In this document: positions 6,282-64,000 of the stretch, one piece after another
Numbering within the stretch: position 1 is the first letter of the stretch
Layout of the letters: each line of letters opens with the position of its first letter
Notes under the pieces: generated by a model
Seen by the model: only the letters and a program-made list of their open reading frames with translations
What the model was told of the DNA's origin: nothing
Databases searched by the model: none
Position numbers and translations under genes: made by a program
Assembly: GCA_965113315.1 (NCBI GenBank)
Contig: OZ220363.1
Reading direction: 5' to 3' (one strand)
Source: Podarcis vaucheri
Taxonomy: Eukaryota
DNA: 64,000 bases

Positions 6282-6413
6282 NNNNNNNNNNNNNNNNNNN
6301 NNNNNNNNNNNNNNNNNNNNNNNNNNNNNNNNNNNNNNNNNNNNNNNNNNNNNNNNNNNNNNNNNNNNNNNNNNNNNNNNNNNNNNNNNNNNNNNNNNNN
6401 NNNNNNNNNNNNN
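6282..6413. other. Assembly gap (132 N)
   Basis: Run of N. Confidence 1.
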
Positions 6414-9555: not shown

Positions 9556-12210
9556 CAAGCTTGTAAAAAATTGAAGGTCACGACATGCACATATCCCAGG
9601 TCAGAAAGGAGGACCAGCAAACCCTTTGAGCTGGTTCATGCAGATTTATGTGGTCCGATGCAGGTAGCTTCTTTAAGTGGATCGAAGCATGTTTTGGTTC
9701 TGATTGATGATTTTTCGAGACACACCTGGCTGTTTGCACTTAAACACAAGTGGGAGGCGGCTGCACTGATCAGTGGAGGCGGTGGAGCTGCGTTTCTCTG
9801 CCAGGGTGGTTTCCTTTCAATCTGATTGAGGGGCGGAGTTCACAGGTTCTGCGCTGCAATCTTTCTTCAGGCAGAAAGGTATCAGTCATCGATTGACTGC
9901 CCCCTACAGTTCGCAACAGAAAACACCGCACCCTACAGGAAGCAGCGAATGCTATGCTGGCAGCCTCGGGTCTGCCACAGCGCTTTTGGACCGAGAGTTA
10001 TAAGACGGCATGCTTTGTTCAGAACAGGGTGTTCAATTCAAGTGTGGGAGACACGCCCTACTTTCTGCTGCATGGGAAAAACCCTAAAGTGGATTTCTTG
10101 CGTGTGTTTGGCTGCGAGGCATGGGTCCTCATTCCAAAGGCCACTCGCAGAAAGGGTGAACCAAGATCTAGGAAAATGATATTTGTTGGCTATGAGCCGG
10201 GCTCAAAGGCGTGGCGTTTCGCATACCCTACTGGCAACCAGTCTAAGCTGCTTATTAGCGTCAGTGCTGAGTTTTGTGAGCAGAGTGGGTGGAAACGTCT
10301 TCACGGGAACCTGGATGTTCTGTTTGACTCAGATGAGGAAGAGGAGGAGGATGAAGCTGAACCTGTTGCTGAGGTGCACAGTCCACAGCCACAGAGTCCA
10401 GAACCAGAATCTCCAAGGCAGAGGCTCCGAACCTCTCCAAAGGGGAGTCCCAAGACCCCTCCACAGGTCTCTGTCAAGTCTGAGCCAAGGAGTGAGCCAT
10501 CCTCGCCTGCAGACCCAGCTGTAAAGCTTAAAAGGTGCAGCAGGTCAGAGGGGGAGATTTCTGACACAGAGGATGGTGTGGCTGGCCCAAGTGAATCAGG
10601 CGCAGTTCCAGAGTTCACGCTGAGGAGATCAGCAAGGTCAACCAAGGGAAAGCCACCAGAAAGGTACGAAGCCACTAGCGTGTGGGTAAGTGTGGCTAGA
10701 TGTGAACCTGAATCCTTTGAGGATGTTCAGAAGTTGCCTCAGGAAGAAGCTAGCAAATGGCGTGAGGCGATGCAGAAAGAGATGAACTCAATGGAGTCTC
10801 TTAGTGTGTTTTTACTCACACAGCTGCCGGCTGGCAAGCAGGCTGTGAGTTGCAGGTGGGTTTACCATCTTAAACCCACAGAAGCTGGAGAACCACAGTA
10901 TAAAGTTAGGTTAGTAGCTCGTGGATTCACACAGAAGAAGGGAGTCCACTTCACGGAGGTCTCTTCGCCAACCTCGAGGGCCGAGACTTTGAGGACACTT
11001 TTAGCAGTTGCTGCAGAGAGGTTGGAAGGTGAACCATTTTGATGTGGATGTTGCCTACCTGAACTCAGACCTCCAGGAGGAGCTGTACATGCTTCCTCCT
11101 CCAAGGTTTGAAGTCAGTGTGCCAGGCATCGTGTGGCGGTTGCACAAATCCATCTATGGATTACGCCAATCTGCCAGAAATTGGAACATGTGTCTGAATG
11201 AAGCCTTAGAAGAGCTAGGTTTCAGGAGAAGTGTTGCGGACAGCTGTCTTTACCTTAGAGGTTCAGGTAAGATGCAGCAAGCTGCTCAGATTTTTGTTGA
11301 TGATATCTTGATCATGACACAGACAGGTAAACAAGTGGAGAAGTTTGCTAAGGAGCTTGGAAAATGGTTCAAGCTCAAGCACCTTGGAGACGTCAAGTCG
11401 TATCTAGGTGTAGAGATAACGAGAGCAAGAGATGGAAGCTTTTTGCTCAGCCAGAAAGGTAAGATTGAACAGTTGCTTGAGAAGTTCAGAATGTCTGAGT
11501 GTGCAGGTGCCAAAACACCCATGGGGGCTGGTTACGTGAAAGAATGTCAGCAAGTAGAACGCGTTGTGTTCGAAAATACTGAACTCTTTCAATCAGCTCT
11601 GGGCAGTCTGCTGTATCTGTCACAGTGAAGCAGACCAGACATAGCGTTTGCTGTCAATCTGCTCAGTAGAGAGGCTTCAAGTCCTAGTGTGCAGGCCTGG
11701 AATGGTATTAAATGGGTGCTACGTTACCTGCAAGATACCAAAGATTTTTGCCTCAAGATGTCAGCTGAGGGTAGTATCAAGCTGACTGCATGGGTGGATT
11801 CAGATTAGGCTAACCTTGAGGACCGCAAATCAGTGTCAGGACTAGTGGTGAAGTTTGGGAACTCAGTAGTTGGGTGGAGGTCCCGGAAGCAAAGTCTCAT
11901 AGCGCTTTCATCTACTGAGGCTGAGTTCAGTGCGCTATCTGAGGTTTGCAGAGAGCTGGAGTTCTATGTGTGTTTGGTCCAGGAACTCTGTGGAGAGCAT
12001 TGTCTTCCCATCGTGGTGCATGAAGACAATCAACCGTGTCTCAAATTGGCCGAGACGGCGCAATTCAACACCAGGACCAAACATTTGGACATACGTTTTC
12101 AGAATGTGTGTCAGAGCGTTCGGAGGGCTCTAAAATACTGTCCCTCAACCAAGAACCTCGCTGATGGTTTCACAAAACCATTAACCTTCCAGAAGCATGA
12201 GGAGTTCTGT
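9553..12210 (+). pseudogene. Copia pol remnant (integrase, RT, RNase H)
   Basis: CQAC..PFELVHADLCGPM, FVGYEPGSKAWR, KVRLVARGFTQ, KSIYGLRQS, FVDD, SSTEAEF, RTKHLDIRF, ADGFTKPL; stops at 9827, 11626 and 11806, plus frameshifts. Confidence 0.93.
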
Positions 12211-12269
12211 GAAGGTGTGTTTGGGGTGAGCATTGTTGCTTATTTCCCCAGATGCAGGGCAAGAGGGGG

Positions 12270-12624
12270 TGTGGAGTTTGCAGGGTTAAAACTCCTTGGT
12301 GTCCTGTATCTGGGGAGGGGCCTGACGCAGGGCCGTATGTCACAGGCTTTGTCTGTGAAAGTTGGTTTCACTTTAGACTAAGAGACGCTGCAAAAGAAGC
12401 TGCGTGTGCTCTAAGCACCGGAGAGATGCTGGAAAGTTCTGATGGATTTATTGCTGTGTAAATAAACACTTTTAGAGATAGCAAAGAACTGTCTCTGGAC
12501 TTGATTTATCCCTCTATCTCACACAGACAGCAGGACTGCTGCGACTCTGTTTTCCTGCCCAGGACAGCCCCAAGCAGAACTATGCAGGGAAGCGCTGACT
12601 GGACGGCAGGATTTAATGGCCAAA
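12270..12624 (+). repeat. Copia 3' LTR (355 bp)
   Basis: TG directly after the PPT, contains AATAAA, ends ...GGCCAAA next to the TSD (terminal CA imperfect). Confidence 0.9.
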
Positions 12625-15963: not shown

Positions 15964-16822
15964 CTATAATACAATGGAGTTGGGGAGGGGGATGAAATAG
16001 AAAACAATGTAACAATTATGTGTGGAATACAAATACGTAAAGGCTAAACTACATGTGACCTTAATTGCTTAATTCTGCCCTTGAGTATAGGTTCTGTTCC
16101 ACAATAGCAGAGTAAAAGCTTTGATCCACATCGGTGCCCTAAAATTCACTTTAACCATTAGCCCCCATTGAAGTTCCAATCTGGGTTGGCTACCCACACC
16201 TACAGTTTGCATTGCAAAAACATTTTATTGTATCACTGTGGAGCAATTAAAACACCTTATGCACCACTCTAGGATCTTGACCCAGATTGGGCCTCCAGCA
16301 CTGGCAATCGGGGGACCAAAGGAACGCACTTCGAAGTAGACAAGTAGGACTATGCTTTTAGTCATGTAATGCTGACACGAATTTAAAACATATTTATATA
16401 GTATTTCAATTAAAAAGTAGGATTATATTTTTTTGGAAAATATTGCAGTGGCAAAATAATCATCAAATTCATTTAATTATGAAATGCAAGTTTTCTGTTT
16501 TCAGTCAATCATAATTGTATTTCAAATTTATGTACTTTTAAAGTCTTCAAACCATGAGGTTTTCAATATTTTACAGAGAAAAGTTATTAAAACCTTCTCT
16601 AATAAAATATTTTAACCACATGGCCGCTTTCCAAACTATTTGGCATTCCCCTCCCTTTAACTCTAATTATAAGTCAAGAAGTTTGTATTCTAGTAATGAA
16701 AGCTGCCACCCAGGGCAGAGTACACTTAAGCCCCATTCCCTTGACACTCTGGGGCCAACTGTGCCAGAGTGGGTGAGCAGCCAATAATTACCCAATATTA
16801 CCACATTTTTGCCAATTATGCA

Positions 16823-17257
16823 TGTAATGGGAATTGGGGTTGCTTGTGCGTAAACTGCAAACTGCTCCAAGCTGGTTGTATAGCTAAACCTTTCCCTGGT
16901 TTGACAGCCCTTACAACGCGACTGTCTCAGTCACTGGCAGAATCCGTCAGTGGGCGTTTCCTAAACTTCTTCCAACATAAAAATTCCTTGACTCCAAGTC
17001 TCCTCCTAGATTCTCTGGGCGGAAGCTTTCTGCGCAGCGTAGGCATGCCAAGCGGAGGTCCTGTGCTCTCTCCGCTGATCTCACTGGAAGAGTCTCGGAG
17101 CCTCCCCTCCGCAGTACTCTCAGCCTCCCCTTTCTCCCTGGTGTCCCCTGGATTTCCTTCCCCAGCGGAAGCTCTCTCTCTCTCCTTGCTAGTTCCCTCC
17201 CCTGCATCATTGGAGAGTCTTACCTCTCCTCTTGCCTCTGATGGCAGTTCCCTGACA
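16823..17257 (-). mobile_element. Gypsy solo LTR (435 bp) related to the LTR at 62477
   Basis: Minus strand TGTCAGGGAACTG...TTACA; perfect 5-bp TSD ATGCA (16818-16822, 17258-17262). Confidence 0.93.
16927..17256 (-). CDS. LTR-encoded ATG-less ORF (109 codons), putative C-terminal extension of the retrotransposon polyprotein
   Basis: Open from LTR base 2; C-terminus LRRKLPPRESRRRLGVKEFLCWKKFRKRPLTDSASD* conserved with 62478-62825. Confidence 0.65.
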   Translation of the reverse strand, partial: VRELPSEARGEVRLSNDAGEGTSKERERASAGEGNPGDTREKGEAESTAEGRLRDSSSEISGESTGPPLGMPTLRRKLPPRESRRRLGVKEFLCWKKFRKRPLTDSASD

Positions 17258-18069
17258 ATGCAGATAACAATTAATATCAAAATAGTTCCAATTAATTCTA
17301 TATTTATACAATTTAATCAAAGTGGTTTCCCGTGCTCCTTGATCAATGTTTATTTGTCCAGTTCTTATATTGCTGTGTTTCATTTTTTCCCCTTAACTTC
17401 TAATTACATTTCAGTTGGTATATTAATCGTTAAGGTAACAGCTACATTTTAAGTGAATACTATTCGAGTTATTACATTATCTAACTTTTCATAGGATTTC
17501 AAAAGAGGTGCTCTAATTATTTTCCTTTTCTCTGTCTGAATATATCCAGTTATAAAGTCCTTGGCCTTTGTTCACTGTCCCATTCTTGAAATTCCTCCAA
17601 ATGCTTTTGTCTCTCAGCGTAGCTGGGGTGGGGCTATAATCTTGGAGAATTCTCAGAATATCTCATTAGCTCCCTCCCATCGTGCTCTCATCTTGCTCAA
17701 TGTTTCTGGACAACAACATACTCCAACAGTCCACTCTTTCTCACTACTCAGTCAAGAGTGTTGAAGTTTCCACAGCCTGAGAAAAAGGGATCCGACTTCC
17801 ACCACAGGACATCTTGCAGTACTTCATTTTAATTAATCACCATCAGCGTCTTCATGCCTCCCTCGTCTGCTGCCCCTAATCTTTATGACTGCATTTTGGC
17901 CAAAGTCCACTTGAGTTATATCTCTTTTCTGTTGTTCTTAAGGGTGGTAGAGGTGGTATCTGCTCTAATTTCCCAAGATAATCCATTCCAGCCGTAGAGC
18001 TCTCTTCTCCTTCTATTTCTTTAAACCACATGCAGATAACTGTTGTTTTAATCACAGGCTTTATTCCAT

Positions 18070-29327: not shown

Positions 29328-30270
29328 TTTCATTTATACCCCGCCCTCCCCGGCCAGAGCCAGGCTCAGGGCGGATAATGCCAGTAAAATCACAATAAAA
29401 ACATAATGGGGGGAGGAGGGGGAATTTAAAATAAAGGTTAAAATGCAGCCTCATTTTAAAAGTATGCCCACGGATCAAAACCATAAGGGAGGGAAAACAT
29501 AAGGGTCAGACTGAGTCCAAACCAAAGGCCAGGTGGAACAGCTCTGTCTTGCAGGCCCTGCAGAAAGGTGTCAAGTCCCTCAGGGCCCTAGTCTCTTGTG
29601 ACAGAGCGTTCCACCAAGTTGGGGCCAGTACTGAAAAGGCCCTGGCCCTAGTTGAGACCAATTGAACCACTTTGTGACTTGGAACCTCCAAGGTGTTGTC
29701 ATTTGTGGACCTTAAGGTCCTCCGCGGGGCATACCAGGAGAGGCAGTCCCGTAGGTACGTGGATCCTAGGCCGCGTAGGGCTTTAAAGGTCAAAACCAGC
29801 ACCTTTAACCTGACCCTGTACTCCACTGGGAGCCAGTAAAGCATTGGATTAATGTGATCCTGCGGCAAGGACCCCGTAAGGAGCCTCGCTGCGGCATTCT
29901 GCACCCGCCGGGGTTTCTGGGTCAGCTTCAAGGGCATCCCAATGTAGAGTGAGTTACAATAATCAAGCCTGGAGGTGACCGTCACATGGATCACTGTGGC
30001 CAGATCAGGGCGAGAAAGGTAAGGGACCAACAGACCAAAATGCCACCTTTGCTGTGGTTGCAACCTGTGCCTCCATGGAAAGGGAGGCGTCTAAGGTTAC
30101 ACCCAAGCTCTTGACAGAAGGCGCTGGCACTAATTGAGCCTCCTCAAGAGATGGGAGTTGGCCGCCCAACCCCATGTCGCCCCGACCCAGCCAGAGGACC
30201 TGCGTCTTCAAAGGATTTAACTTCAACCGGCTCCCACGCAGCCACCCAGCCACAGCTTCCAAGCATCTGG
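29273..30270 (-). mobile_element. L2 LINE, 5'-truncated, with (TTA)n tail
   Basis: LKLNPLKTQVL, VKSLGVTLD, SRLDYCNSL, VQNAAARLL, WLPV ORF2 motifs; microsatellite tail 29273-29327. Confidence 0.9.
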
Positions 30271-57617: not shown

Positions 57618-58063
57618 TAAAAGGTACATTGGGTGCCATTCTAGGTCAGAATAAAATGAATACAATAGGACCAAGTGCAACATCACAGTGCAAAAAGCCT
57701 ACCCTCTAAATGGTTGTCTACAATGGTAGGGATCACAAATGGTCTAGAGAACATGCATAGGTCATGGCAGGACTTGCCTCTCTAATCCCTTCACTGTATC
57801 ACTTTGACAGTGTGAAAATTATCACTGAATGCAGAGTTTGGAAGTCTGCTACAACCATCTAGAACTGGGAAGACAAAAATTGTGCAGATCCATTTCAGTG
57901 AAATGTTGTGCAATTTCAAGTGTAACAAGGAAAGGGATAATGAAAAGCTCAAGTGATAATGCACAAAGCTTTCACAATATTAATGTTTCCAAAGGGCAGA
58001 TGCAAGTATACACGATAAATCTGATAAAGGGAACTTTTTAATATAGGAAAGAGCAAGAAGTAC

Positions 58064-58264
58064 CACAAAGGACATCTTCATCAGATCCATCCGGGCAATC
58101 TCTTATCCCATTGCAGAGCTTCTCCGGCTGTAAGCAGATGGAAGTTTCATTTGCGCAGGGGTATTTTGGTGGTCCGCACATATACCCTTCACAATGATCT
58201 TCATCAGAGCGATCCTCACAGTCAATGTCCCCATCACACAGCCATGCTTTGCTAATGCATCTCC
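58064..58264 (-). CDS. LRP1B: LRP1B coding exon (~exon 22): two LDL-receptor class A repeats
   Basis: 201 nt, AAG acceptor and GTAC donor; [25 protein letters not shown]...[11 protein letters not shown]; phase 1 to 1. Confidence 0.95.
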
Positions 58265-59704
58265 CTTGAAAAAAGAAAAATAAACACACAGAATCAGACC
58301 AAAAGCAAATGCAGGAAAATATTCTGAACAAAAATGTTCGGAAAAACTTTGCCTTGTATTTTAAAATAACACCTACAACAAAGTTGAGAACAGCCATTTC
58401 CTGCCCCAATGTCAAATTTAAAAAGCGTTTGATGGAACAAAAGTGCACGGAAGTAATTCAACATTTTATCTGTCCAAGGAGAGTATATAGAGAAAATGTG
58501 TGTGTGCGCGCACAGTGTTATTAAAAACATGAGCTTTGTTCCTCTTCCTCTTTAGTGCATTTTTAAATGCAAAGGAGGGGGAAATTTTATGGGAACAGTT
58601 ACACTTTGCAATGTGACTAGGTAAAAACAGAATTCTGAATAAGAATAGAAGTGGTAACAAAGTATCCACCCCCCACCCATCCCCAATCCAAGATGAATCT
58701 GAAACAAATTTGTGAAGGATAATAATTTTTGAATAATCATAAATAAAAAGGGGTAATCTATGATCAGTTATTTGTTTAGATAGAATACTTATAAGCAGCT
58801 TCATATCTCTGAGACACTCTCAAATAGGGTTGCCATGTTTCAAAAAGTTACCACAATATCTGGTATCAAGTGCAGAAAGGCCCTACAGGGATATGCTTAT
58901 TCAGGTGACATTTTCTGCCTTCAGCCTTTGCTATTTTTTCTTTTATTTCCCCAACTGCCATTTTTGTTTAAGGAATATTAAAATATAGATCTGAATTATT
59001 GAGATTAAAGGCAAATATTGAGAGTTATTATGCTCCTAAATTTATTTCAAGTCAATTGAACTGCCGAAGCCCTGATTTTGTTTTAATCGCCCTTCCGTGA
59101 TCATTTTGTAGTTAGCTGTATCTCAATCCCGGTTCAAACACGAACAGTGGCACTGGGGAATCTGATGTTTGGCACCATTACACTATGGCTTACTATGTCA
59201 ACATGTGGACTCTTGGAGGGGTTCTTACAGTGGCTTTGCCATTGCCTCAATCTGCCTTACTCCTCTATCATGCTGAGCTAGGCCAAGGATTGGCTTAGAG
59301 TATGGTCTGAACCCAGGATCATGGTTAAGTTCTCTCCACAATGACCACAAACTGTAGCCAAGAAACTCAAGGCAACTGCATGTGTCCTGTTGTTGTACAT
59401 GAACTAACTGCACATGTGCCCATTTCTCTGCCTGTATCCATGCTTTCTTCACATGCTATTCATGAAAATCCTTTTGCTGTGAGTTTAACTATCTTGTAGG
59501 TACTAATAGTAAAAGGACAGTAAATAAAAAACTGGAAAAACAGGACCCCCAAAGCAGAAATTCTAGCCATCCATGACAGGTAACTTTGCTTCAATGACTC
59601 TAACAATCTCCCAGTTTTAACACATAATCTGTAAGGTATAATTAATTTAATAATATTGACTGACATAGTAAATAGTATACAACTGCACTTACTGCTAACT
59701 AATG

Positions 59705-59945: not shown

Positions 59946-62476
59946 TAATATACAATCATAAACTCAAAAAAACTTAATGATATATTTAATGGTGCTAAAA
60001 AAAACCCTATTCTAACATTGGACAGATTCCATTTCATATGAAAATAATTATCCAGAATACTCCCACTTTGCCTCCATTAATTTAAGCACTTCTGTAATCT
60101 TCCTTTTCCTTTTCTCATGTTGTCTACATCATTCCCATTAGCTGATCCATGCCCGATGCTCTGAGTATAGTACTATTGGCCCTTATTCAACTGCAAATGT
60201 GCAGGTCTGTCAGATAAGTAATTAGGGATGGACAAATAGGTTGATTTCAGTTCTCTGTTTCTTAAATTCAGTTCTTACATTTCCACGGCAATTTGTGTGT
60301 TTGTGTGTGTGTGTTTAAAAAATTCCTCATGAGAACTCATCAGCATTTTAGTGCTAATTTCTCTCAACGCACAAAAATGCAGTTTTGACTACTATACAGA
60401 CTTTTTCAATCAATTTCCCCTAATATTATTAAGCATCTTTGTGTGCCATTTTCATTAATATATGCATTTATATGCTCATTTTACCTTGCTAAATGCATTT
60501 TCTTCATTGCATGGTTGGAGAACTGCACTGCAAAACTAAGAGAAGTGCAATTTGCTGGATGGGTGCATTTCTTCTCTATCTCTAGTAGTAATTATACCTA
60601 GAAGTTATTTAACAGAAAGGAAGTATAGGGGGAAGGAACCCTCCTAAACAGCTGATATGTATGTGCTCTTTCTTGTAGGGGCTATAAACTTCTAGCCCCA
60701 GTTCCTGCATCATGTTGCAGAAACCGTGTGTGCAGCATAAATTGGCATGTGCAAGTCTTTATTGAGCTAGGGCAGAAATGGGGAACCTGTGGTTTTCAAG
60801 CTGTTACTACACTCAAATGCCCATAACCCTTCACCATGTTACCGAGGGAGCTTGAGTCCAACAATTTCTGATGAGCCATTGGTTCCCCATCCCTGAGTCA
60901 GGGGGACCTTTCTTGGGTATATCTACATCTACATCCTAAGCTGGGCCATGATGATTACATTCCAGAAAAATACGTAACATTCCTTTAATACAAAACCACC
61001 CGCCTGTGAATTTGGCACCATAGGCCTCCCCGATAAAATGTTTTTTGGGAGGGGGGAGGTCACGGAGGCGGCCCTGGGCCAGTGGCAATGGGAGGAGGAG
61101 GAGACTGGGCACCAGAGAGGAGGAGTTGCCAGCCATTGACACCATCCTGATGCCTCATTTGGCTCCACTCTCTAGCTCCTAGCATCCCTGTTTCACACAT
61201 ACATCATGTGTGCATCATCACCCCCTCAATCTTCTACTTAAGTTGGCACTTCTGGAGAGCCTAATCTTTCCATTTCAGTTTCTCTTAGCTTCCTATTTTT
61301 CTGTTCATCAATTTCCATATCAGTTTGCAATATATATTTTTAACATAAAAGCATTTTAGTGTAATATACACACCTTTGTACACAATCTTCCAGAATATAC
61401 ACATTTTTGTGAGAACATTTCCATAATAAAATGCATTTTGGTATATTGTTTTTATTAATATATGCAATCTTATGCACACTTTCCCCAAATACACACTTTT
61501 TTGTTGGAGAACTGCATCATAAAATTCAGAGAAGTGTGTATTTTGAAAGCTAGCTGTGTTTTGCTTCAGGTGTTGTTCTAGGAAGTATGAATTCCTCCCC
61601 ATCCCTACTCAGTGGCAGAAAAGTTCCCCAGATCTGCAAAGGAACAGCAGCTGTTGTCTCTCACTAACTTTTATAGCTGCCAACAGGCCCCATATTTTCT
61701 ATTTCTAAGAGGATTACATTCAACTTTCCCTGCTACATCCCTCTTCTAATTTTTCCCCTTGTTTAACCCCCCCCCCAATATTCACAGGTCTCATCCAACA
61801 TCTCACAATTGTTAATTTTTCAAAGTTGTTCGTATTTCCTCCTCTGTTCTCTTCAAGTCTGTTGCCTTGTTGGCCCAACATGAGGTTTTTATTTAATTGC
61901 CCAGTCTAGGCCAACAGAGAGCTAATGGAAGCCACTGATGCCAAGTAAATTGGAAATAACCCAAAGTAAATTGAGTTTGCTTCCATAATAACACACTGCC
62001 TCAATTCTGTTTTATAGATATATACACTTTTAGAATAAGTCTACTTCCTTGACTTCTTTTTCACTTTTCCCCTATAATTTATATAAAGATGACAAAATGA
62101 CATTGGTGACCCCTATTCTCTCAAAATTTCCAGGCAGGACTTCCGAATGGTATCTGGTCTAACTTTTGACAGGTGTGAACAGATTATTAACAGAGATTGT
62201 GGATGGATATTTCCTTCTGGCTATAAAAACACAAATATCCATTAATTAAACCAGCTGCTGTTACAATTTTTAATCGGTTAAGGACTTTTTTTAAAAAACA
62301 AACAAACTTACCTTAAAATATGTAAGTTAAAGGTATTAGACATGTTTTAAGTATTCCTGACATCATATAGCATATATGTAGTACAACCCATTTTAATGTA
62401 CTTAGCATGTTGTGATATTTTACTTGTATGGTTGTTGATTTAATTTTGTTCAGGTTTGTGACCACATAATAGATAT

Positions 62477-62929
62477 TGTCAGGGAACTGACATCAGAGGA
62501 AAGGGAGTTGGTAGGGCTCCCAGAGACTGGGAGAGAGTCAGCAGCTAAAGCAGGGACAAGGAGGGGGAGCGAGGGGTCTCTGGAGGAGGAGCTCAGTAAT
62601 GCTGAGAGAGACGCAGCAGCCCAGGCAGGAAACAGCAGGGGAGAGAAAGGGGTGAGAGACACTTCCAGCGAAAATAGCGGGGAGGTGTCAGAAGCAACTG
62701 CAGGGAGACCCATGCTTCGCCGGAAGCTGCCACGTCGTGAGTCCAGGAGACGCGTTTCCGTTAAGGAACTTCTTTGCTGGAAGCGCTTCCGCAGGCAGCC
62801 ACTGTCAGACTCTACTAGTGACTAGAGCAGACATGTCTGAGGAGCTCTGTCACACACAGAGGTTTGTGGGGCCGCACAAACTCTGAAGGGGCACAATTTT
62901 AAGCACAAGCAGCTAATCATCCCCTGACA
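62477..62929 (+). repeat. Gypsy 5' LTR (453 bp)
   Basis: TGTCAGGG...CCCTGACA 8-bp inverted termini; both ends align with the solo LTR at 16823-17257. Confidence 0.9.
62478..62825 (+). CDS. LTR-encoded ATG-less ORF (115 codons)
   Basis: VRELTSEE...LRRKLPRRESRRRVSVKELLCWKRFRRQPLSDSTSD*; codon-level conservation with 16927-17256. Confidence 0.65.
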   Translation, partial: VRELTSEERELVGLPETGRESAAKAGTRRGSEGSLEEELSNAERDAAAQAGNSRGEKGVRDTSSENSGEVSEATAGRPMLRRKLPRRESRRRVSVKELLCWKRFRRQPLSDSTSD

Positions 62930-62931
62930 GC

Positions 62932-62942
62932 AGTCTGACAGT
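62932..62942 (+). promoter_or_regulatory. Self-priming primer-binding site
   Basis: AGTCTGACAGT is the exact reverse complement of ACTGTCAGACT at 62801-62811; no TGG tRNA-type PBS. Confidence 0.75.
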
Positions 62943-62974
62943 CTTTGTACGCTGCCTGTGCAGGAGAAAGCATC

Positions 62975-63988
62975 ATGAGCAACCCAGCCGGAACCGGAGA
63001 GGCAGGGGTTGGAGCTGGTCCAAGCTTGGAAGAAAGGTATCAAGCTCTGGAGGTCCAACTTGCGCTGCAGACGGCGAGGCTCGAGGAGAGAAGGGCTCAG
63101 GATGCTGACAAAAAGGGGAGAACCACTCAGTTCCCCAGAAAGGTACCAGGATTGGTGCAGAAGTTTGGGGGGGACCCCAAGGATTACCATGCCTTTAGGA
63201 CCGAGATGCAATATGCCCTGAATGTGCAGTTTGATGAGTTCCCTGATGAGGAATCGCGAGTTGCTTTCGTAATTGGGCATCTTGAGAAGGGGGCGCGGGA
63301 CTGGGTTCGACCCCTGATGGCAAAGCACAACGATATCCTAAAGGACACTATGAAATTCTTTCGTGCAATGGATATCATGTTTTCCAGCGATATTGAGGAA
63401 GGGGTGGTGCGCAGACAGTTAATGGCTTGCAAGCAGGGAAGCAGATCTGTCCGTGAGTACTGGACTGAATTTACCATGCTGATTCACAGATTGGGGTGGG
63501 ATTTATCGGCAGCACCCATTCAGATGCTATTTGAAGAAGGTCTTTCTTCAGCTGTGAAAGACGAGCTGGCCAAGAGCCCCAGGGCGGTGTCTATGGATCA
63601 GCTGACCAAATCTGCGCTGACCATTGGAGCGCGCCAGGAGGCAAGAGCCTTGGAGAGGCGGGAAGGGAGAGGGGAACGTTGGAAGGAGTTACGCATTCCA
63701 GACATTCCTGAGCCAGCTTTCCCGCCGGCAGAGCCGATGGAAATCGGAACAGCCCGCGCGCGCGCAGTTTCAAAGCCCAGTGAGGGGGCGAAGAAGGAGG
63801 GAAAGGGAGCCCGGAAATGCTATCTCTGCCAACAGCCAGGCCACTTTGCCAAAGTCTGCCCCCAGAGGAAGGAATGGCAAGGGATGGTGGGAGCAGTTGA
63901 GGGGGAAGAGCAGGGAGAAACGGAGCAGGTAAAAGCCAACGCCTGGTTGCCAACGTCAGGGCACTGCAGCCAGGCCAAAGAGCAGTGA
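62975..63988 (+). CDS. gag: Retrotransposon Gag (capsid and CCHC nucleocapsid), 337 aa
   Basis: ATG at 62975; QGSRSVREYWTEF major-homology-like motif, EPMEIG, CYLCQQPGHFAKVC zinc knuckle; no stops or frameshifts. Confidence 0.93.
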   Translation: MSNPAGTGEAGVGAGPSLEERYQALEVQLALQTARLEERRAQDADKKGRTTQFPRKVPGLVQKFGGDPKDYHAFRTEMQYALNVQFDEFPDEESRVAFVIGHLEKGARDWVRPLMAKHNDILKDTMKFFRAMDIMFSSDIEEGVVRRQLMACKQGSRSVREYWTEFTMLIHRLGWDLSAAPIQMLFEEGLSSAVKDELAKSPRAVSMDQLTKSALTIGARQEARALERREGRGERWKELRIPDIPEPAFPPAEPMEIGTARARAVSKPSEGAKKEGKGARKCYLCQQPGHFAKVCPQRKEWQGMVGAVEGEEQGETEQVKANAWLPTSGHCSQAKEQ

Positions 63989-63996: not shown

Positions 63997-64000
63997 GTGC

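Follow-up and report, generated by a model that had tools for sequence, protein, structure and literature searches.

A long terminal repeat (LTR) near the end of a 64-kb stretch of Podarcis vaucheri DNA (64,000 nucleotides, here called the window) raises the question of why the repeat of a retrotransposon should be an open reading frame kept as protein, and to which protein that frame belongs. The LTR runs from T 62477 to 62929, with the ends TGTCAGGG...CCCCTGACA and an 8-bp terminal inverted repeat (TGTCAGGG/CCCTGACA), and it is a 5' LTR: gag lies downstream, and the body of the element runs past the end of the window. Contigs of four sequencing runs stack up beginning at 62462-62488, and the flank to the left carries almost none. 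From base 2 of the LTR a frame that lacks an initial ATG stays open for 115 codons; the coding share of the LTR is about 70% (the first three quarters). A second, solo LTR, flanked by a 5-bp target-site duplication (ATGCA at 16818-16822 and 17258-17262), is open in the same frame for 109 codons, and neither further copies of these LTRs nor pol fragments of the group were found elsewhere in the 64-kb window. The parts of the two LTRs are as follows, the coding parts being named in anticipation of the assignment argued below:

62477-62929, plus strand: 5' LTR of a Ty3/gypsy chromovirus-type element, 453 bp with TG...CA ends, as read in the sequence
62478-62822, plus strand: copy, within the LTR, of the 115 codons that close pol and encode the integrase tail; not translated from this 5' LTR
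62823-62825, plus strand: pol stop codon TAG, 25 bases into the predicted R
62478-62651, plus strand: half of the tail that is acidic, rich in Gly and Ser and poorly conserved, with DNA-level conservation over the first 30 or so bases
62652-62822, plus strand: conserved block of 57 codons under purifying selection, from codon statistics and contig variants
62715-62822, plus strand: basic core, consisting of an Arg-rich run, a predicted short helix VKELLCWKRFR and a Ser/Asp end
16823-17257, minus strand: 435-bp solo LTR belonging to a diverged sister family, with TG...CA ends
16930-17256, minus strand: fossil copy of the integrase tail in the solo LTR, 109 codons, with TGA at 16927-16929

The first-pass annotation, made from the letters of the window, had described both frames as we find them, open from LTR base 2 for 115 codons (62478-62822, then TAG) and for 109 codons (17256-16930, then TGA). 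It was also right to see an LTR here, which spans 62477-62929, but the end coordinate that it gave, 62825, is that of the stop codon only. Long open frames also lie antisense to both (62450-62713 on the minus strand, 16769-17452 on the plus strand), and the one with shared third positions contains no stop, with 29 of 56 residues identical in the block; these frames are most simply a by-product of the codon pattern on the sense strand.

When the two LTR frames are compared, their last 57 codons align without a gap and share 37 residues; for 21 of these the codons differ, four of the changes being CGN/AGR swaps at arginine. Differences within the block number 19, 11 and 34 at codon positions 1, 2 and 3, and pS is 0.82, which is saturated, against a pN of 0.23. 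The coding frame retains 37 of 57 residues, the other five frames 13-29; random placement of the 64 differences leaves 20.5 +/- 2.6 identical residues and reached 37 in none of 20,000 trials. When the bases of each LTR were shuffled, an open frame of at least 109 codons from base 2 arose in 0.7% of trials for one LTR and 0.5% for the other. A chance open frame is rejected by the frame comparison, the random placement and the shuffle trials together. Searched with blastn and 7-base words, the LTRs are alike only over their first 31 bases (90%), whereas tblastn recovers the conserved block with E = 2e-15; this contrast, the saturated synonymous sites and the frame test reject conservation of the block at the level of DNA. 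Two types of conservation are thus present in one LTR: the tip is kept as DNA, as expected for an end that integrase recognises, and the C-terminal block is kept as protein.

The composition of the tail changes along its length. Its upstream part, rich in Gly and Ser, holds 17 D+E against 11 K+R, while the last 36 residues hold 13 K+R against 4 D+E and end in S-D-S-x-S-D. The first-pass annotation had claimed as much, namely an acidic and poorly conserved N-terminal half and a highly basic C-terminus, and the rest of its comparison stands as well: the 37 shared residues, 21 of them with different codons, the change of stop from TAG to TGA at the same place, and selection that acts on protein rather than on promoter DNA, now supported by the saturated pS and the frame comparison. 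Its block of 56 codons proves to be one of 57, its gap-free alignment and residue counts being right within one codon.

Variation in related species was read from Logan contigs of four runs, from four organisms, mapped on 62300-63100 at a likeness of at least 80% (3652, 1276, 791 and 23 contigs per run). These contigs are 70-120 bases long, too short to span the junction of pol and LTR, and among variants at the level of at least 5% none on 62300-63100 is an indel. Substitutions in frame, which mix decay after insertion with differences between lineages, fall 5, 6 and 15 times at codon positions 1, 2 and 3 (p = 0.009) among the best-supported 41 of the 68 variants. The same best-supported 41 of 68 are distributed along the tail as follows:

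62478-62651, acidic half: 3 synonymous, 10 non-synonymous
62652-62822, conserved block: 9 synonymous, 4 non-synonymous
62715-62822, last 36 codons: 6 synonymous, 0 non-synonymous

One diverged contig end, at 62791, retains the residues ...KRPLSDSASD by means of other codons. Loose contig ends before 62475 are few and mutually discordant.

These counts bear on the explanation that the conserved elements are DNA or RNA signals (promoter, enhancer, R hairpin, primer) and that a purine-rich composition keeps the frame open incidentally. It is true that the first 31 bases are conserved as DNA, that the P-L codons overlap both the self-primer described below and an initiator-like CCACTG, and that the antisense frame is open too, with its 29 of 56 identical residues. 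Yet synonymous sites are saturated while the residues are kept, and only the sense frame attains 37 of 57. The variants of the basic core, moreover, are synonymous in every case (six of six, among the best-supported 41 of 68), and further species encode the same residues with other codons. We consider a purely nucleic-acid explanation extremely improbable and take the block to be coding sequence selected as protein.

The identity of that protein is given by its relatives. A profile of the 58-residue block, run against 1.84 billion representative proteins, returned a single match, P0001, with E = 2e-19, and the match occupies residues 417-474 of 474, the last 58 of the protein. P0001 is one uninterrupted frame, composed of the end of an integrase core, SH3_Tf2-1 (E = 7e-20), Chromo (E = 3e-11), about 100 acidic residues, a Gly/Glu-rich run and then the LTR-type tail. 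At the junction it reads ...VD/VRELPSE... (the slash marks the boundary), with the same opening residues as both LTRs of the window, followed by 102 residues to the end of the basic block. Over 109 residues the tail of P0001 shares 55% identity with the frame of the solo LTR (E = 4e-23), and its identity to the frame of the 5' LTR is 47%. A word search restricted to the tail found P0001 and P0002 only. P0002, from Podarcis muralis, has the same SH3_Tf2-1 and Chromo domains, and both it and P0010 of the same species pass without a stop through the same ...G/E-rich-VD/VREL... junction after the chromodomain, as gene models that break off inside the tail. A further P. muralis gene model, P0009, bears the name 'vomeronasal type-2 receptor 26-like' and contains integrase domains that belong to this group; it is probably a model that has swallowed an insertion.

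Because P0001 carries the block at its C-terminus, continuous with the SH3 domain and the chromodomain, we read the frame of the 3' LTR as the tail of integrase. For the Tf1/sushi-type chromoviruses of this squamate group, we judge it very likely that pol reads by way of the polypurine tract into the 3' LTR; the continuity of the frame is read on the proteins of relatives, the 3' end of the present copy lying beyond base 64000. The first-pass annotation had offered this reading, an integrase C-terminus running through the polypurine tract, and P0001, P0002 and P0010 support it. It had also offered an accessory ORF of the nef type, which finds no support, the frame being continuous with integrase in these relatives.

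The accessory reading deserves a fuller statement, in which U3 would encode a separate protein from a spliced or internal start of its own. Retroviral ORFs that overlap U3 have precedents in the LTR-encoded superantigen (sag) of MMTV and in lentiviral nef, where, as in the lizard element, coding sequence shares its DNA with the U3 promoter and is translated from the 3' copy only. A Met also precedes the basic run in both copies, at residue 79 in the LTR at 62477 and two codons earlier in the solo LTR. Sag and nef, though, are separate genes with their own starts and spliced mRNAs, and the lizard frame is the end of pol: no start codon heads it, P0001 has Tyr rather than Met at the site in question, and P0001, P0002 and P0010 run stop-free from integrase and chromodomain into the LTR frame. 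On this continuity a stand-alone accessory ORF is rejected, a protein separate from integrase being very unlikely.

A piece of a host gene captured as the tail, or LTRs that are fragments of a domesticated host gene, would be scarcely credible. The idea was considered solely because the block bears the name of no known retroelement domain, and no support for it was found; its sole database match is a retroelement integrase, thousands of contigs lie on it in several species, and the solo copy is bounded by LTR ends and flanked by a target duplication. The tail is better read as retroelement integrase.

Tails of this kind extend beyond the closest relatives, although many other relatives end a few residues after the chromodomain. 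The distant relative P0006 has an ...EEGVD/VTETS junction and ends in ...GLLCWKRR... and a short acidic/Ser stretch (...EDSS). Two Podarcis proteins of a sister group, P0012 and P0016, continue for about 190-210 residues after ...GGMD/VRGSG, and the end of P0016, a basic run together with ...VLSWC...DSDGAS, may be a distant form of the same tail end. Anolis integrases extend about 100 residues past the chromodomain. The LTR boundaries in P0006, P0012, P0016 and the Anolis proteins are putative, placed by sequence pattern; if the pattern places that of P0012 and P0016 correctly, the tail encoded in their LTRs is longer still.

How one stretch of DNA would serve both as LTR and as the end of pol depends on where transcription begins, and the following features of the element bear on this:

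62477-62800, plus strand: predicted U3, in the open frame save its first base, T 62477
62801-62811, plus strand: predicted first 11 bases of the transcript (self-primer), within the codons for P-L-S-D-S
62932-62942, plus strand: self-priming primer-binding site, 2 bases past the end of the LTR
62975-63988, plus strand: gag, 337 aa plus stop (Retrotrans_gag, E = 3e-9; zf-CCHC, E = 1e-5)

The 11 bases at 62801-62811 are perfectly complementary to 62932-62942, and the minimum-energy fold of the RNA pairs the self-primer with the primer-binding site (z = -2.8). The site is of the Tf1 self-priming type and not a tRNA primer-binding site. Self-priming is known in the Tf1/sushi group, vertebrate members included (PMC6317226, citing Butler et al. 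2001). Other traits of the Tf1/sushi group seen here are the CCHC gag, the TG...CA LTRs and the short target duplication, and the chromodomain at the integrase C-terminus can be read in the tail-carrying relatives P0001 and P0002. On the model of Tf1-type priming, the transcript would start at 62801, where R would begin. Because the self-primer places the start there, U3 would be 62477-62800 and entirely coding, T 62477 itself being the third base of the upstream Asp codon.

We propose that the integrase frame does not stop after the chromodomain but would continue through an acidic stretch and then through the polypurine tract, which would be translated as Gly and Glu codons. It would cross the LTR boundary as GA/T GTC, that is Asp-Val, the TGTC tip giving the last base of the Asp codon and the codon for Val, and would then cover all of U3 and reach 25 bases into R. 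Only the 3' LTR would provide the translated copy, since its U3 alone is in the mRNA. Reverse transcription would copy U3 to the 5' end, where it would act as promoter and not be translated. As both ends receive U3, an untranslated copy of about 110 codons would be present in each 5' LTR and in each solo LTR. A single stretch of DNA would in this way be the end recognised by integrase, the promoter and coding sequence; in the particular element studied here the frame is presumably translated.

Several other features of the window are recorded here. At 9954-12381 on the plus strand, three adjacent ORFs resemble by eye a Ty1/copia-type pol (integrase end, reverse transcriptase with ...FVDDI..., RNase H), which would be a different retrotransposon. 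An ORF of 185 aa at 29506-30063 on the minus strand contains the motif ...LDYCNSLY..., which we take to be associated with the C-terminal part of ORF2 proteins of non-LTR retrotransposons. The ORF at 58038-58448, also on the minus strand, has two Cys-rich ...C-x-D-G-S-D-E... repeats like those of LDL-receptor class A and may represent a host-gene exon. The 132 consecutive N at 6282-6413 are an assembly gap or masked sequence.

What the tail may do was approached through its composition, its predicted structure and its relatives. A basic cluster, R-R-K-L-P-R-R-E-S-R-R-R, is conserved in it, and the pattern R-R-E-x-R-R-R ... L-C-W-K is invariant across three families. The AlphaFold model of the tail, built from three sequences, is of low confidence (pLDDT of 58) and mostly disordered, with one better-supported helix at residues 95-105 (VKELLCWKRFR). 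No named relative was found in Pfam, among the sequences of solved structures (E up to 10) or in the ESM Atlas clusters. On this model the tail looks like a disordered linker that leads into an Arg-rich run, then a short amphipathic helix and finally a Ser/Asp end, and its upstream half behaves as a spacer that needs only to stay open. By analogy with the integrase tails of Ty1, Ty5 and MLV and with the CR motif of plant CRM elements, the basic end may be an anchor of integrase for nuclear import, for chromatin or nucleic acid, or for both, acting alongside the chromodomain, a proposal that we rate at slightly below an even chance; the first-pass annotation, too, had suggested that the basic block could serve in nuclear localisation or chromatin tethering. 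The C-terminal tail of Ty1 integrase holds a bipartite NLS and contacts Pol III, that of Ty5 carries the Sir4 targeting domain and that of MLV binds BET proteins. The likeness to these tails lies in a short, disordered and often basic C-terminal end used for import or tethering; they differ in having no known sequence similarity to the lizard tail and in not being known to be encoded by an LTR.

Within the same architecture, the basic end could instead be a tether of the nucleosome or centromere type (an arginine anchor plus an aromatic residue) that directs integration rather than import. In plants there is precedent for an LTR-encoded integrase end as a putative targeting domain, the R-R-E-x-R-R-R ... 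L-C-W-K pattern is invariant across the three families, and the basic end may resemble arginine-anchor motifs; on the other side, it matches the sequence of no named motif in Pfam, the solved structures or the ESM Atlas. We consider this tether unlikely, and the broader reading of the basic end as an import and/or chromatin anchor is retained in what follows.

The relatives that carry the tail may have a second tethering device. Two FxGF motifs are present in each of P0001 (residues 295 and 341), P0002 (454 and 492) and P0010 (348 and 393), between the chromodomain and the LTR boundary and outside the window; P0003 ends with FRGF and has a variant, FEEF, at the place of the first motif. In P0001 each unit (residues 283-298 and 329-344) consists of a short hydrophobic stretch, a 9-residue acidic/Ser linker and FxGF. 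The TND-interacting motifs of LEDGF/HRP2 partners follow a grammar of helix, acidic linker and FxGF (PMC9987994), and the units upstream of the LTR are candidates for a second tether that fits this TND grammar. A stronger form of the idea, in which the basic end is an unnamed vertebrate integration-targeting module that, together with the chromodomain and the two FxGF motifs, chooses insertion sites, appears doubtful to us. If it were true, a promoter and a targeting peptide would be encoded together and must co-evolve in every lineage.

Reading of pol into the 3' LTR has been described in plants. In all group A CRM chromoviruses pol runs into the 3' LTR, where the CR motif is encoded (PMC3059260), and pol likewise enters the 3' LTR in Beetle7 and several Bingo elements of the Reina clade in Beta vulgaris (PMC3605345). 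The lizard element shares with these plant CRM and Bingo elements a Ty3/gypsy chromovirus frame that continues past the polypurine tract and an LTR that encodes the putative targeting end of integrase. It differs from CRM in several respects: the CR motif replaces the chromodomain, whereas the lizard element keeps a Pfam Chromo upstream of the polypurine tract and the LTR adds the tail; it lives in a vertebrate; its predicted U3 is coding throughout; and the block is an unnamed basic motif, in which no likeness to the CR motif was noticed, by inspection rather than formal comparison. With the vertebrate Tf1/sushi chromoviruses (V-clade) the element has in common the CCHC gag, SH3_Tf2-1 with chromodomain and the 11-base self-priming site, and it differs from that group in that pol enters the LTR for about 110 codons. 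Since pol is already described as entering the 3' LTR in CRM elements of plants and in some Reina chromoviruses, the novelty implied by the first-pass annotation is reduced; for vertebrate chromoviruses we found no description of such a frame in the literature covered, which did not extend to subscription papers on the sushi group.

Taken as a whole, the explanation that the LTR frame is the 3' end of pol, together with the proposed role of the tail, is in our view likely to be right. It means that the LTRs of an abundant group of vertebrate retrotransposons are not purely regulatory DNA, and that the end recognised by integrase, the polypurine tract, the promoter and a protein lie on the same bases, a compact case for the study of overlapping constraints. 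For annotation, solo LTRs of the group will give rise to spurious 'conserved ORFs', and pol models that end at the LTR boundary are truncated. The LTR-encoded tail of the lizard element parallels the CR motif of plant centromeric elements, and its basic end, together with the chromodomain and the FxGF motifs, provides a testable hypothesis for how these elements may enter the nucleus and choose chromatin in reptiles.
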